From contig NW_005434651.1 of NCBI RefSeq assembly GCF_000315625.1, positions 703,177 through 767,176 on the forward strand: a DNA stretch of 64,000 nt, written 5' to 3'. The notes beneath the pieces were generated by a model that was not told the origin of the DNA, searched no databases, and saw only the letters and a program-made list of their open reading frames with translations. Below, piece by piece: positions 35,888-45,325 of the stretch. The translations under genes and the position numbers were made by a program. Every line of letters starts with the position of its first letter. The first letter of the stretch is position 1. Source of the DNA: Guillardia theta CCMP2712. Taxonomy: Eukaryota > Protista > Cryptophyta.

Positions 35888-37073
35888 GTCCAAGAGCCGT
35901 CTACTGGTCATCCATCTCCTGCGGACTTCAACGGTTTTATTCTGAGGGGAACTTGTTTTCCCCTCCTCGTCAGGCCTCATTGGAGAAGGGGTAGGGGTAA
36001 CAATCATAGGGGTACTGAGCAAAGATATAAGTTTGGGCGCAATTCCTAGGGGGTATTTACTACAAAATACCTTCAGAAAATGGTGGGTACTTGTCAGATC
36101 GATTATATTGAGTGGGTAGGGGTACTTTTTTGTGGGTCCATTTTCCACGGGGGTTGATGTTGTAAAGGAATGGAGCCATATAAAGGGGGTGGTGAGGTAT
36201 GAGGGGGTAGGGGTAGTACTTTCACCCCGTCAACAAGCACTTTATGTAAAAGTTGGGGTACAGGATTGTCAATTACGAAAAGTACCGGGTCATCTAAGGG
36301 AAGAATACTGATGTAAGAAGGGGTATAGTATTTTTGTGGGGGGCGTTTCTGTTTACAAGGGGTTGAAAGCTGTCGGCTAGGGGGTGGGTGCTGCAAACAG
36401 TGCGTCATGAAAGGGGTCACAGCGAATGCCGGGGGGGAAATGGCTGAAGGGTGGAAAGGCGAGGGGAAGGGAAGGACAAGAAGGAAGATGATGGAAACGT
36501 GAGAGAGGATAACGGGAAAATGAATGAAGAGGAGGAAGGATGCATTGTTTGAAATGGGAAGGAGAGAAAGAAGTTTGTATGTGCATGAGGTAGGGGTTGA
36601 CAAGGAGCAAGTATTTGAGGAACGGGCCATGGGTTGTAAAGGACGGAGGAGATGAGATATTGAGGAAGGAGATAGATTCTTGAACAAAAAGTGTAAGATC
36701 CCCTTTCTCATCAACCTGGGAAACTCAAGCCTGAGCTGGTAGTTATTTGATGTGGGAACTCCCAAAGCAAATCAACGCATGGTGGGAAAATTCTACCTGT
36801 AGTCGAAGAAAAGGAAAAAGAGCATATTTTCAAGGCATTGATCTGAGAGAATTCAGAGCTGGACCGACTCATTTGTATGTTTGCAATACACGAAATTGAA
36901 ATAGTTGTAATTTCTACCATGTGACGTATAGCTGTTCCACGGAAAGAAAGCAAAGATGATCTACAATCGTTTTCTTGCTTGTTTGATTGTTATTAACCTC
37001 TTTGCAGGCTGGCAACGACGGGCTAGGACGAGGTCTGAATGAGGAGAAGGTTGCTGCGGGACAAGCGGCGGCG

Positions 37074-40000
37074 ATGAGAAGGAAGATGTTTCCGACCCCC
37101 CGCAAGGGCTTGTTGTTCCTCTTCCTCCTGAGCCATTTCCATCCTGTTCATCTGTTCCTCCACAGCCTCGATGTGACTGGACGGGCAAGCTCATTAATAG
37201 GAGGAGGAGGAGGAGGAGGAGGAGGAGGATTCAGGTGCTCGATGTTCAACGCGCATCGAACAGGCCTGAGACGGGCAGCTTCAGTGAGAATGATCATGCC
37301 AGGTCAGCCCTTCCAGGAGGCAGAAGAGGTAGCAGAGAGGATCTTCAGGAAGCAGGCGAGGGCCTCGCAGAGCAAGGGCACGAGCAGCAAGGGGGAAGGA
37401 GAGGAGGAGGAGGAGGAGGAGCTCGCACCGGCGGAGGGCAAGTACACCTACGACGTTGAGCTTGAGATACCGATCGGGCTGACTCTGAAGGAGGTAGTGG
37501 GCTACGGGGTGTACGTGGATGCGGTGAACGAGGGATCGGCGAGAGAGGCTGGGGTGCAGCGGGGGGACAGGATCGTGGCTACAGCGGCGACCATGGGCAA
37601 TCAGATGTGGGAGAAGAACACTATGGAGGGTGTGATGGCTTCTGTTCACTCCGTAGGCCTGCTGAGGAAGAAGATCAAGATCAGGTTCGAGAGAGATCCC
37701 GTCCTGTCCTCGCTCGTGTGCTTCGACTCGCAGGACGCGCGGGACACTAGCAGGGTCGACCTCCCCCGTGCTCTCATCTCGGTGGAGAAGGCGCGGATCC
37801 GCATCCAGGAGACGGCGACGGAGACGTTCGAAGTCTCCCTCCCCCTCCCGGGCAAGGACAAGCGCTTTCTCCGCGACAAGAACCTCTTCGATGGCGAGCT
37901 CCCCTATGGGCTCAAGCTCGTTCAGGTGGCAGCGGAGGACGGGACGACGGCGGTGGAGGTTGCGAGCATCATGCCTGAGGGGACGGCAGCGGCCAGCAGC
38001 CTCCTCCGTGTGGGCGACCGCATCGTGGCGACGCAGTCGAGCGTTGGTAACGGGATGTGGCCCAAGACGACGCTGGAGGGGATCCTGTCGGCAGTGCGGA
38101 CGAGGATGGACAGCAACATCAGGATCAAGGTGGCGAGGAAGGTCAACTTGGGGGCCTGGGAACAGTCTTCCATGGATGTGATCAAGGCCAGCCCGACCGA
38201 CAAGATTCCCTACCTCACGACGAGCGGAGCTGGGGCGAACCTCCGGGCCGAGGCGAGGACGGGGAGCGAGGCGTCGACCCTGCAGGGCAAGAGGAGCACT
38301 TTAGGAACGTCCCTCGCGGTCCTCCCGGATGGGAAAGGATGGGACGTCGTGCAGAAAATCAGGCAAGTTCACGACCGGCAGGTGGACAAGTGGCCTCCCC
38401 ACCTCATCCTCCTCCGCCCCTTCGTGCGCGGCGAAGACTTCGCCGTCGCGTCCTCGCTCCTCCTGGAGGCGCTGGAGGGAACGGAGCCCTTCGAGCTGAG
38501 GATGGAGCTGACAGTGAAGGTCTACCACAACCGCAGCGCCTCCGTCTGGCTCGTCCCCGTCGGGGAGTCCCGGGACTGTGTGCTGGAGCTGCAGGCACAG
38601 GCGGCGGAGATCTTCCCGCAGTGCGTGAGGAGGGGGTCGAAGCTGTTCGACTACACCCCCCACCTGACCCTCGGGCAGTTCCCCAGCGAGTCAGCAGCTC
38701 GGGTGTTCGTGGCCCTCGTGCAGGACAGCTTTGCTAACTTCTCCTTCAGCGTCTCCCACCTCTTCCTCCTCTCCCGCCAGGACAGGTCCTCTGCTGGGGT
38801 CGACCAGCTCAGGATCAAGCTGGGCAGGCGGGGGTTGATGGGGACGCCGGTGTCGGTGGCGGCGTCGGAGTACGGCGTTCTCCGCCGAGCTGGGGCAGAG
38901 CTGAACTCGTCGACGATGAGGAGCGTGCTGCTGGAGAGGAGCTCGTTCGACCTGCTGGCGTACGGCAAGCAGGGGAACCTGAGCGCGATCGAGAGCATCG
39001 TGAAGGAGCTCAAAGAGAACGAGGTCGAGATCGACTCGAAGCTGCTCAACATCATCATGGGCTCCTACATCCTTTGCGACCGCCCAGCCTCCGCCGTGGA
39101 GGCTTTCAGCTACTTCTCCAGCAGCCAGCACCCCCCGTCCCTCCGTCCCTCCGTCCACTGCTACGGCACGCTGATCAAGGCCTACGGGCAGCTCGGGCAG
39201 CTGGAGGCGGCGTTCGAGACGCTCAACGGTATGGTGAAGGGTGGGCCCGCCCCCTCGATCCGCGTCATCAACGCCCTTCTGCAGGCGTGCGTGCGAGCTG
39301 GGAACCTGACGGCAGCTCAGACGCTCTTCTCGTCGCTGCGGGGGGTGCGGGGGGAAGGATTCGCTAACTTCCTGACGCCGGCGACGGAGGCCGGGCTGTG
39401 CATCTCGCTGCAGCCGACGGGAGTCTCTTTCAATATCATGGTGAACGCGTACGCGAGGAGGAGGAAGGTGGAAAAGGCCTTCAAGATGCTGCTGGAGATG
39501 CGCCGAGCTGGCTGCAAGCCCGACCAGATCACGTACACGACCCTTGTCAAGGCGTGTGTGGCTGCTGGGCAGTTTGACAGGGCGGAGAGGCTGCTGGGGG
39601 AGATGGAAGAGCTGGGGATCCCGCCCAACGCCTACTCGTACAACTGCATCCTGTACGGGCTGGCGCAGAAGTTGCAGTGGGGGAAGGCGACGAGGCTCCT
39701 GCAGAGGATGGAGGAGGACGGGGTGGAGGCGAACCTCTTGTCCTACTCCTACTGCATTCTGGCGTGCGTGAGGGCGAGGCGAATGAAGGAGGCGAGCGCG
39801 CTGTTCGAGGAGATGCGCAGGAAGGGGATCGTTCCGAACCTGTTCGTGATGAACACGATGATGTCAGGGTACGCGGCCAAGGGGATGGTGGACGAGGCGC
39901 AGGGGATCATGAAGCTGCTGCAGGACATGAGGATCAAGGCTAACGCCATGACCTTCTCCTCGCTGATCGAGGCCTTCATCAACGCCGGGTACGCGGACAA

Positions 40001-40916
40001 GGCGGTGGAAGTGAAGAGGAAGATGGAAGAGCTCGGGGTGGAGGTCGACATGGTGGTCAGCACGCAGATGCTCAAGGCGTACACGAGCATGGGGAAGGTG
40101 GAGGAGGCGATCGAGAAGCTGGAGGAGATCGTGAAAGAGGCGTCTTCCCCTGTGTCCTCCAGGACCTTCGACTCGGTCCTTTTCCAGTGCTCCAAGAGGG
40201 GCAGCAAGGAGGAGGCGCTGAGGGTACTGGGCCTAATGCTCAGGAGCAGGGTAACACCGAGCAGGACGACCTGCCAGCTGCTTTCGCGCATGGAGAAGCT
40301 ACAGGGGTCGATCCTCACCCAGTACCTCCTCGACGTCATCAGCCTCCTCCGATCCCACAGCGTCCGCCCCCCCGGCCCACTCTACCTGGCCGTCCTCCGA
40401 GCCTCCCTTGATGCCGGGGAGACGGAGCTTGCGACGATGGTAGTGGAGGAGAGGATCCTGGGGAAGTTTTCCGTGTCGAAGCAGGATGAGGAGGAAGCGG
40501 AGAAGCTCGAGATGAGGATGATGAACCTGCTGCAGGTGGGCCCCCGCGTTGCTCCTCTCCCTTCCACCTCCCCTCCTCTCCCTCTCCCTCCTCTTTCTCT
40601 GTCTCTATCGCTTTCTCCTCCTCTCTTTCCTTCCTCTCCCTCCCCCGTCCATACTTTTCTCTGAGCTCGAGTACAGGCTTCCAAGGGAAACTGGTACGAT
40701 CGCCCGGGCGTCGGGAAGAGGATGGGGCGGCTGGGAAGCTACTTCAGCGGCAAGATGGAGGGGCAGTGGGGAGGAAGAACGAGTTCTTTGTCCTCATCCC
40801 CCGCGAGGAGCAGGGGGTATGAGGAGGAGTGGGAGTACTTCAACGATCAAGCTTACTCGCGGGGAGGGACGGGGGTAGGAGCAGAGAGTTCAGGGACTTA
40901 CGATGATTGGATGTGA
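37074..40916 (+). CDS. Probably plastid-targeted PDZ-PDZ + 2H phosphoesterase (LigT-like) + PPR-repeat protein
   Basis: Two MET1/ZKT-type PDZs (GDRIVATAATMGNQMW; GDRIVATQSSVGNGMW); 2H motifs WPPHLILLRPF and YTPHLTLGQF; ~9-11 PPRs (PDQITYTTLVKAC, PNAYSYNCILYG, PNLFVMNTMMSGY). Last exon 40677-40916. Confidence 0.88.
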
Positions 40917-41375
40917 AGGAAGTTGAACTGAAACACTCCCTGCTGCCCCCTGCTGCTCTCACCTTCCCCCTCCCCTTCCACTCAAACACTCGTTGCCGTC
41001 CATCCATGTTTCATGCTGCTGCTGTCTCTACCCTCTCCTCCTGGTTCGCACAACTGAGTCTGCTGATTTCGCCGTCCTGCCTCTCCTTGCTTTCTCCTTC
41101 ATGTCCTCCCTCCTACCTGCCTCGCTCTCCCCTCTCCCCCCTCTTGTTCCCCTCCCTCTCCCTCCTCTCTCATACTCCTCCCCCACCCCATCTCACCATA
41201 CCTGCTCTCTCCTGCTCCTCCTTGACCTTTCCAACGCTGATCCTCATAGAAGCATGTGGTTTATTCACTCCAATCAAGTGCAAGTAGCAGGACTGACCTC
41301 TCCCTTCCCCTCCTCTCCTTCCTCCTGCCCCCTTCCCTTGTTCCTCTCCTCCTCTCCTCCTCTCGCAGGATCTTT

Positions 41376-43372: not shown

Positions 43373-43872
43373 TTTTAGACGTCTCTACCCTTAGATGTGA
43401 CGACCCTTATTACTGTTGTAAACGAGGTTTAAAAGTCCCTAAAAGTACTTATAACTAAATTATAAGAATACTGAGGACAGGTGTACCAGGAGTTTGGGAT
43501 GCATAAACGAGCTTCAGCTATAATGAGTTATAAATAATGTTAAAATCCCATGTTTGTACCATAAAAATATATTTTGACACAGTCCCGGATCCTCAGTACA
43601 TATTGACCGCCGTAACTTGGATGACTCCTAGCTTATAGTTGTAAATTATGTACCAAATATTTTAAACTTTGTAGGAAGACATGTAACAAATCAGGAATAT
43701 GTACCTAAAAGAAGGCTTCTAAAAACTAATTTACAGGGGGGTCTTTACAACAATGTATAATTGTTCCTTTTACGGAACATCGATCGAACGCCGGGACTTT
43801 GACCGGGCCCGGAGGCACTCCGAGTTTCCGTTACATTTGAAAGTATCTGTAACGGCAGGTCGAATTTTCATC

Positions 43873-45325
43873 ATGGCCGAAGAAGCGAAAGCAGTAGGAT
43901 GGGGCATCCTGGGGACGGCAGACATTGCCAGGAAGCTTGTGCGAGCTATCTCCAGAGCCGGAGGCTCCAGACTAGTGGCCGTAGGGAGCAGGACGCTGGA
44001 GAGGGTAGAGTCATGGTGCGAACAGAACCAGATCCCCAGTGAGGTAGCAAGGTACGGAAACTACGAGGAGGTCCTGAGGGATGGGAAGGTGGATGTTGTG
44101 TACATTCCACTCCCAACATCCATGCACAAAGAATGGGTACAGAAAGCAGCAGATGCCGGCAAGCATATCCTCTGTGAGAAGCCGGTAAGTGTGAAGTTCG
44201 AACGATGTGTGGACCCCGTGATGCCGTGTTCAGGTTGGGATGAATGCTCAAGAAGTAGAAGAAATGATCGCCTGTTGTGAACACAACAACGTACAATTCA
44301 TGGACGGGGTAGAAGCATGCACTTGATGGAATGGACCACGTGTGTTCACTTGCTCCGTGCAGGTGATGTGGATGCATCACGTCCGGGTCCCAGTGCTGAG
44401 GAAGGCGGTGGACAACCAGGACATGGTGAGGCAGTGCCGATCTATCTCTGCATGCTCTGACGCGAGCAGATGGGCGAGGTCGTTCGGATCGTGACATCCT
44501 TCACGTTCTTCGGGGGAGAGGAGTTCGACCGGACTAACATCCGCATGAAGAGCAACCTGGACGGGCTGGGATGCGTAGGTGACAAGGATTCCTGCGCGTG
44601 CTGATCGCTCGAGGTGACGAGGCGCGCAGGTGACTTAGGATGGTACAACGTGAGAGCCATCGTCTGGGCCTTCCAAAAGGAGCCCAATGAAGTCTGAGAT
44701 TCACATTGGAGGCGAAGTGTCCTTACAGGACTACCAGGTGTATGCGGTAGCTCACAAGAGGAACTCAGAGGGAGTCATCAAGAGCTTGAACGCTACTCTC
44801 TTCTACGATGACGGGAGGTTTGCTTCCCTGGACTGCGGCTTCGACACCAACTGCCGCCAGACACTGGAGATCGCCGGTAGCTGTCGGCTCCTTTGAGGCC
44901 TCTGCCTGCCACTGAGATGGTTCAACCACCAGGAACGAAGAGTTCGATCCGTCTGGATGATTTCGTCCTCAACGCTAGTGAGGAATCCTCCTCTTTCATC
45001 GTCAACACATCGGTATAGCTGCTCTGTGGTGCATCAAAACTTCGAATCACCTTCCAGCAGGCATTTAAAGATAGCGGCATGATCGTCGAGCAGACGTCAT
45101 CAAAGCATGAGGCCGGAGGTTGTTGTCAGGAAGTTCGCATGGTGGAGTGCATGAGCAAGATCGTGAGGAGTACGTGTTTGCGCTGTTTCACATGCCTACA
45201 TCTGACATGCATATCCAGCAAGGCAACTCGAAGACTACTGGCCGAAGATCGCTCTCCAGACCCAGCGAACGATTGATGCGATCATGAAGTCTGCTGAGAG
45301 CGGGCAGCCAGTCAAGCTCAAATGA
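43873..45325 (+). CDS. Gfo/Idh/MocA family oxidoreductase
   Basis: VGWGILGTADIA; VDVVYIPLPTSMHKEWVQKAADAGKHILCEKP; DLGWY; stop 45323-45325; many short introns. Confidence 0.93.

Follow-up and report, generated by a model that had tools for sequence, protein, structure and literature searches.

A 2H phosphoesterase domain joined to two PDZ domains and a PPR array in a probable chloroplast protein of Guillardia theta and other cryptophytes

What might a protein do that carries a 2H phosphoesterase domain between a pair of PDZ domains and a PPR array? The question is raised by a gene at 37074-40916 on the forward strand of a 64,000-nt stretch of Guillardia theta CCMP2712 DNA (contig NW_005434651.1; the whole stretch is called the window here), which encodes a protein of 1233 amino acids (aa) made up, in order, of a presequence, two PDZ domains, a 2H phosphoesterase domain and a PPR solenoid. 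The best explanation we can offer, to which we would give a little under an even chance as a whole, is an RNA-specific PPR stabiliser or translation factor of the plastid to which a 2H domain that opens cyclic phosphates was added; most cryptophytes would have this domain in an active form, and G. theta in a degenerate one. The parts of the gene are:

37074-37154, + strand: signal-peptide-like leader (aa 1-27), then Phe28; hydropathy peak of 2.6 at aa 12-20, presumed cleavage site
37155-37289, + strand: transit-peptide-like segment (aa 28-72) with a Gly run; six Arg/Lys against one acidic residue, seven Ser/Thr
37443-37694, + strand: PDZ domain 1 (aa 124-207), algal plastid-type; PF00595, pLDDT ~90
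37812-38147, + strand: PDZ domain 2 (aa 247-358); PF00595, weak matches to PDZ structures in the PDB, confident modelled fold
38301-38819, + strand: 2H phosphoesterase domain (aa 410-582), PF13563 subfamily; Pfam E 1e-24 to 4e-26, model and structure matches
38400-38408, + strand: motif 1, His443-Leu-Ile445 (HxI); HxT or HxN in orthologues
38661-38669, + strand: motif 2, His530-Leu-Thr532 (HxT)
38919-40535, + strand: alpha-solenoid of 14 helical hairpins, including 10 profile-scoring P-type PPR repeats (aa 694-1063); repeat profile and AlphaFold model
40536-40676, + strand: intron, 141 nt, GT-AG; absent from cDNA L009, UniRef A0A7S4PKN5 and EKX48163
40677-40916, + strand: last coding exon, a Gly/Arg/Ser-rich tail of 79 aa plus the stop; cDNA poly(A) at 40933

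The frame that starts with the ATG at 37074 stays open to 40535 (1154 codons; open reading frame (ORF) analysis) and holds both PDZ domains, the 2H domain and the PPR array in that order, as the preliminary description of this DNA had claimed from the letters; the end at 40916 that it gave to a single frame is reached only after splicing, the stop codon of the spliced protein lying at 40914-40916. A 3799-nt contig with a 3´ poly(A) (L009), which we regard as an assembled cDNA on account of its splicing and its tail, matches window positions 37006-40536 in one piece at 99.9%, skips 141 nt of genome (the GT-AG intron at 40536-40676) and then resumes. All domains are therefore on one transcript and the 2H segment is kept in after splicing, which answers the point that had been left for cDNA to confirm. 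The intron sits 3´ of every domain and the fusion itself is uninterrupted. The first few bases of the cDNA differ from the genome at an AG acceptor near 37008 (window 37006-37008), which suggests an intron in the 5´ untranslated region; the exon upstream of this putative intron was not found, and the reading frame remains open 5´ of the ATG at 37074. The protein is a 100% match to UniRef A0A7S4PKN5_GUITH, whose sole name is "PDZ domain-containing protein", and an exact look-up with the unspliced ORF gave no match. The NCBI gene model EKX48163 has the last 557 aa only, the PPR half, and this may be why the fusion was overlooked. A gene-model artefact, or two separate genes, was considered and is ruled out by L009, by a second transcript from Baffinella (L004) and by a genomic ORF described below (L012).

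The 2H assignment stands on several legs. Pfam places a PF13563 domain at aa 420-570 (E 1.3e-24), the AlphaFold model of the domain has a pLDDT of 88, and all of the top 20 VIA matches are 2H proteins, the best being YjcG (Z 16.8, root-mean-square deviation 2.9 over 164 residues). Archaeal LigT, ThpR, Usb1, AKAP18 and CPDase are the other top structural matches (Foldseek, VIA-align), and the fold is further matched by the poxvirus cGAMP phosphodiesterase, Acb1 and the 2H-fold subunit of the trypanosome mitoribosome. In the Atlas, TM scores of 0.81-0.84 were obtained to PF13563 and MJ1316-EEP-2H proteins. The preliminary description was thus right to call this a 2H domain. By sequence and model it is a member of the PF13563 subfamily, in which fusions to MJ1316, EEP nuclease/phosphatase and poly(A) polymerase are frequent. 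MJ1316 has been described as recognising RNA 2´,3´-cyclic ends and fusing with RNA repair domains (PMC6514570), and we count the fusion habit of the subfamily for a role at RNA cyclic ends. The MJ1316-EEP-2H-poly(A) polymerase, standalone and 2H-VWA proteins share this subfamily with the G. theta domain by sequence, tree and predicted fold, and motif 1 is usually HxN or HxT in them; the G. theta protein lacks their MJ1316, EEP and polymerase domains and has HxI. With E. coli ThpR/LigT, B. subtilis YjcG, Usb1 and plant CPDase, the domain has in common the 2H fold and the two His motifs (Z 12-17) at an identity of 13-19%. The domain has neither of the extended motifs of ThpR, HxTxxF and HxTxxR, and the substrate of ThpR can therefore not be assumed for the G. 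theta protein.

In a tree of 118 2H domains, all nine copies fused to PPR fall into a single group (support 98), with standalone and 2H-VWA proteins as neighbours rather than the G. theta paralogue on contig C29. This paralogue, a second 2H gene at ~671,900-674,300 (L002:1186-3513, - strand), is a three-part ORF with an NTPase_1 domain (PF03266), a Gly-Ala repeat, a RapZ C-terminal domain (PF22740) and a PF13563 2H domain with HxN and HxS. A third 2H gene, of the LigT/AKAP7 type, lies on C11 at ~147,000 (L015:1078-1929, - strand); it fell below the score filter and was left out of the tree. An origin of the fused domain from the 2H genes of G. theta itself was rejected, the C29 paralogue grouping elsewhere and the C11 gene being of the LigT/AKAP7 type.

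Could the domain be catalytic? The two His residues noted at 38400 and 38661 correspond to His443 and His530, which have the spacing of about 85 residues expected of 2H proteins and are invariant in the cryptophyte copies that cover them (9/9 and 8/8). Motif 1 is HxT in six of nine cryptophyte copies and HxN in two; HxI occurs solely in G. theta, in genome and cDNA alike. Motif 2 is HxT in G. theta and in 6/7 covering orthologues, with HxA in P0029. Arg430, Asp434, Trp440, His485 and Gly534-Gln535 are likewise kept across cryptophyte lineages. For E. coli ThpR, which hydrolyses 2´,3´-cAMP, the T45A variant, at the site matching motif 1, was inert while the distal T127A variant was fully active (PMC4201822). 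Since the G. theta Ile falls on the site that is essential in ThpR, this copy may be weak or dead, and from its residues it is probably weakened or inactive. The concern about HxI raised in the preliminary description is therefore justified for G. theta but does not extend to the orthologues with HxT or HxN, and across cryptophytes the 2H family looks catalytically competent as judged from its residues. The domain is also about as conserved as the other domains of the protein: among distant cryptophytes its identity is 37-52%, compared with 48-64% for the PDZ domains and 49-54% for the PPR core, and among closer cryptophytes it is 74%, compared with 71-77% for the PDZ domains.

The PPR array is recognised by PPR_2 (Pfam, E 3e-64) and TIGR00756 (NCBIfam, E 1e-66). 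Repeats were located with a repeat profile and hairpins were counted in the AlphaFold model; seven repeats follow one another at a 35-residue spacing. The earlier estimate of about ten repeats agrees with the 10 that score on the profile but falls short of the 14 helical hairpins of the model. SMR, NYN, DYW and TGM domains were absent from Pfam and NCBIfam scans of the protein. In the full AlphaFold model, two PDZ folds are followed by a disordered linker, the 2H domain, a second loose linker and the 14 hairpins (mean pLDDT 83). The residues at positions 5 and 35 of successive repeats are NT, ND, TN, NN, SN, NN, SD and TS in G. theta, and the commonest codes of the family at repeats 3-9 are ND, (T/S)D, ND, SN, SN, SD and TN, most constant at repeats 3-5 and 8 and more variable at 6 and 7. 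Read with the plant PPR code (PMC6468296; PMC11094755), the family code would correspond to about U-G-U-A-A-G-A with pyrimidine flanks (Y-U-G-U-A-A-G-A-Y). G. theta departs from it at repeats 4, 5 and 7 (TN, NN, NN) and is thus the odd copy in PPR code and active site both. The family code is common to three algal groups, which suggests one conserved RNA target. The G. theta assembly (87 Mb, 669 contigs) lacks psbA, and therefore does not hold the plastid genome. By our estimate, a 9-nt motif is expected several times by chance in a plastid genome; the predicted site presumably resembles the anticodon loops of tRNA-Thr(UGU) and tRNA-Tyr(GUA), a match that is likely to be due to chance.

How widely is this architecture shared? 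Word searches and a full HMMER search found the 2H fusion also in Baffinella frigidus (P0004, whose N-terminus matches KAJ1492618.1), the source of transcript L004, and in Geminigera-like environmental sequences (P0002, P0003, P0014-16, P0023, P0026 and P0214). P0214 is an intronless genomic ORF of 1362 aa (L012) with 46 cluster members; the sequence of P0017, the named Geminigera protein, is a fragment and stops short of the 2H domain. About 20 PDZ-PDZ-PPR proteins without 2H were found in a haptophyte (Scyphosphaera), diatoms, Nannochloropsis, a pelagophyte, Pinguiococcus, Phaeothamnion and unnamed sources. These align over their full length except between PDZ2 and the solenoid, where they have 28-161 residues (254, of low complexity, in Phaeothamnion) and the fusion has ~300. 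Those of Nannochloropsis (GAB5033339.1), Pelagophyceae (KAJ1446183.1) and Phaeothamnion (CAM9397980.1) have the same repeat register, the C-terminal hairpins and a largely common code, and are annotated merely as hypothetical, PDZ or PPR proteins. The chassis is thus an older family that lacks 2H outside cryptophytes, which the preliminary description had overlooked, and its core job therefore does not need the 2H domain. In a tree made without the 2H columns by a quick method and with no outgroup, all rows with a 2H domain cluster together (100), next to a group that includes the haptophyte (98). The simplest reading is one gain of 2H, by insertion, in cryptophytes; a root on the cryptophyte branch would instead mean one loss. 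The searches brought up no named copies from Rhodomonas, Hemiselmis, Cryptomonas or red algae, which may hide in clusters or fragments. In G. theta itself, a further PDZ-PDZ-PPR copy that lacks 2H was sought and not found; the gene with two PDZ domains on C24 is unrelated.

The location was approached through the presequence. Homology to orthologues begins at Met73, and the segment before it is basic and rich in Ser and Gly. Hydropathy and composition fit a plastid-type, bipartite presequence, as had been proposed from the hydrophobic leader, the Phe and the transit-like peptide, but the Phe motif is weak in G. theta compared with Baffinella, where a hydrophobic stretch is followed by an ASAFAP-like motif, and with the diatom orthologues, which have a classic Ala-Phe junction. 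In the Geminigera-type orthologues the motif lies far behind the hydrophobic stretch. A Phe motif behind the signal peptide marks proteins of the plastid stroma (PMC4329603), and the motif in the Baffinella and diatom orthologues therefore indicates this compartment; the protein is probably chloroplast-located. No transmembrane segment was seen by hydropathy in the mature G. theta protein.

Two stretches match PF00595 (Pfam, E 2e-8), and PDZ1 has Atlas matches to eukaryotic, chiefly diatom, PDZ clusters (score 0.94). We take the PDZ motif of the protein to resemble that of MET1. Arabidopsis MET1/ZKT likewise combines a plastid PDZ domain with helical repeats, as judged from its description, though the G. 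theta protein has two PDZ domains, PPR repeats and ~1200 aa, and MET1/ZKT has TPR repeats and 37 kDa. MET1 binds stromal loops of CP43 and CP47 (PMC4754418), and by analogy the PDZ pair might tether the protein to photosystem II. The gene on C24 (~430,000; L011:1051-2938, - strand) encodes a signal-like leader and two related PDZ domains, with no PPR or 2H match.

Taken as a whole, the explanation that we favour would run as follows. It builds on the architecture, transcript, fold, distribution and conservation of motifs and code as shown above, with location, target, substrate, activity and PDZ partner being what we infer. The nucleus-encoded protein would be imported into the plastid stroma, where the PPR array would bind one conserved plastid RNA site (about Y-U-G-U-A-A-G-A-Y), probably stabilising or activating the bound RNA, while the two PDZ domains would dock the protein on a protein partner. 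A PDZ-PDZ-PPR chassis common to algae with complex red plastids would have received a PF13563-type 2H domain between PDZ2 and the PPR array in the cryptophyte lineage. Where RNA has been broken or cut immediately 5´ of the PPR site, or on a neighbouring RNA, this domain would in most cryptophytes open the resulting 2´,3´-cyclic phosphate and so make the end available for turnover or repair; the copy of G. theta, whose motif 1 has Ile and whose PPR code has drifted, would probably be weakened or inactive. PPR arrays bind RNA in parallel (PMC11094755), so that a 2H domain N-terminal of the array should lie on the 5´ side of the bound site. What it would be best placed to reach is the 3´ end of a fragment lying upstream, cut or broken just before the PPR site, or else nearby RNA. 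From this position, 3´-end trimming of the same RNA is awkward, a point missed in the preliminary description, which had proposed processing of RNA ends.

Several observations weigh against this explanation. The Ile at motif 1 of G. theta stands against Asn, Thr or Ser in 109/109 other domains of the subfamily, and Arg439, Tyr448 and Phe483, positions that are 83-99% conserved in the rest of the subfamily, are changed in nearly all cryptophyte copies, so the substrate of this clade may have shifted. Catalysis by the PF13563 2H subfamily is itself putative. The full model has no fixed contact between the 2H domain and the PPR array (pTM 0.54, loose linkers), the orthologues of three other algal groups are without 2H, and the G. 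theta presequence has no clean ASAFAP motif. Plastid RNase E and RNase J are not known to leave cyclic ends. A stronger version, a sequence-programmed RNA end-healing enzyme in which the PPR array aims an active 2H domain at breaks in one plastid RNA and the PDZ domains direct it to the photosynthetic membrane, seems to us doubtful.

These points bear on what else the 2H domain might be. It could be a module without catalysis that binds a nucleotide, an RNA end or a protein, or serves as a scaffold for one, within an ordinary P-type PPR stabiliser or translation factor. We lean against this but regard it as a possibility to be reckoned with: HxI is tolerated in G. theta, HxA occurs in motif 2 of P0029, family-conserved residues are changed clade-wide, the chassis exists without 2H in other algae, and the fold matches include AKAP18 with bound AMP and the trypanosome mitoribosome 2H-fold subunit. 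Neither AKAP18 nor this mitoribosome subunit is known to act as a catalyst. Such a module would, however, hardly call for both His residues and Arg430, Asp434, Trp440, His485 and Gly534-Gln535 to be kept in domains that are only 37-52% identical, and HxA need not stop catalysis, the distal Thr being dispensable in ThpR (PMC4201822). Or the domain could be active on a small molecule (a cyclic dinucleotide, a 2´,3´-cyclic NMP or ADP-ribose cyclic phosphate) and so connect the mRNA bound by the PPR array with a nucleotide signal in the plastid. This would fit the matches to Arabidopsis CPDase, the poxvirus cGAMP phosphodiesterase and Acb1, the hydrolysis of 2´,3´-cAMP by ThpR, and an N-terminal 2H domain that is poorly placed to act at the 3´ end of the RNA in the array. 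We consider it unlikely, the closest relatives by sequence and structure being PF13563 domains that occur together with MJ1316, EEP and poly(A) polymerase, and fusion to an RNA reader suggesting an RNA substrate.

The compartment may also have been misjudged. The site of action might be the periplastid compartment, the nucleomorph or the mitochondrion, and the task might be, for instance, to heal RNA ends of nucleomorph transcripts; the range of the 2H fusion coincides with the one red-plastid lineage that has a nucleomorph (PMC4329603), the G. theta presequence is non-canonical, and the Phe motif of the Geminigera type is set far back. Against these stand the stromal Phe motif in the Baffinella and diatom orthologues, a PPR code common to algae without a nucleomorph, and the action of PPR proteins mainly in plastids and mitochondria, which together make this quite unlikely. 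That the 2H domain is a neutral passenger insertion, or the already refuted gene-model artefact, is very improbable: the partial model EKX48163 and the loose linkers would agree with it, but the spliced cDNA, the Baffinella transcript and the intronless 1362-aa genomic ORF with its 46 cluster members do not, nor does a conservation of the 2H domain equal to that of the PDZ domains.

Among known systems, PPR-SMR (SOT1), PRORP (PPR-NYN), PPR-TGM and PLS-DYW proteins likewise have an organellar presequence and couple a PPR array that has canonical 5th and 35th residues to an enzyme fold acting on RNA, and PPR-TGM has its precedent in G. theta itself (PMC4029402). SMR, DYW and TGM are C-terminal of the array (PMC4029402; PMC11094755), whereas the G. 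theta 2H domain is N-terminal of it, behind two PDZ domains. PPR arrays with an enzyme domain are thus already known; the 2H type and the N-terminal position seem to be new. Literature searches for PPR with 2H phosphoesterase, and for PPR with PDZ in Guillardia or diatom plastids, found none, most subscription journals being outside their coverage; to this limited extent they agree with the preliminary description, which knew of no described PPR-2H fusion. Two further observations concern the surroundings of this work. A PDZ-PDZ-PPR family of haptophytes and ochrophytes with a largely conserved code (P0031, P0039, P0047, P0051, P0056, P0145, P0194, P0207 and others) is apparently undescribed, and in the window an unrelated neighbour, an exon of a Gfo/Idh/MocA oxidoreductase (PF01408, E 1.5e-19), lies at 43753-44280 on the + strand.

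Few kinds of PPR protein have an enzyme built in (DYW, SMR, NYN and TGM), and from each of them a branch of organelle RNA biology has grown. With a 2H domain, RNA end chemistry, the opening of cyclic phosphates, would come to the 5´ side of the bound site; if the end-healing reading is true, the protein would represent a new catalytic PPR class and speak for targeted repair of RNA ends in plastids. The natural HxT, HxN and HxI variants provide a ready series for tests of catalysis, and a knockout is feasible in Nannochloropsis, which carries a PDZ-PDZ-PPR protein, or in Phaeodactylum if it is a carrier. Plastid gene control in these algae is barely known, and the PDZ-PDZ-PPR family, with its largely conserved code, suggests that cryptophytes, haptophytes and ochrophytes have in common an old regulator of one plastid RNA.

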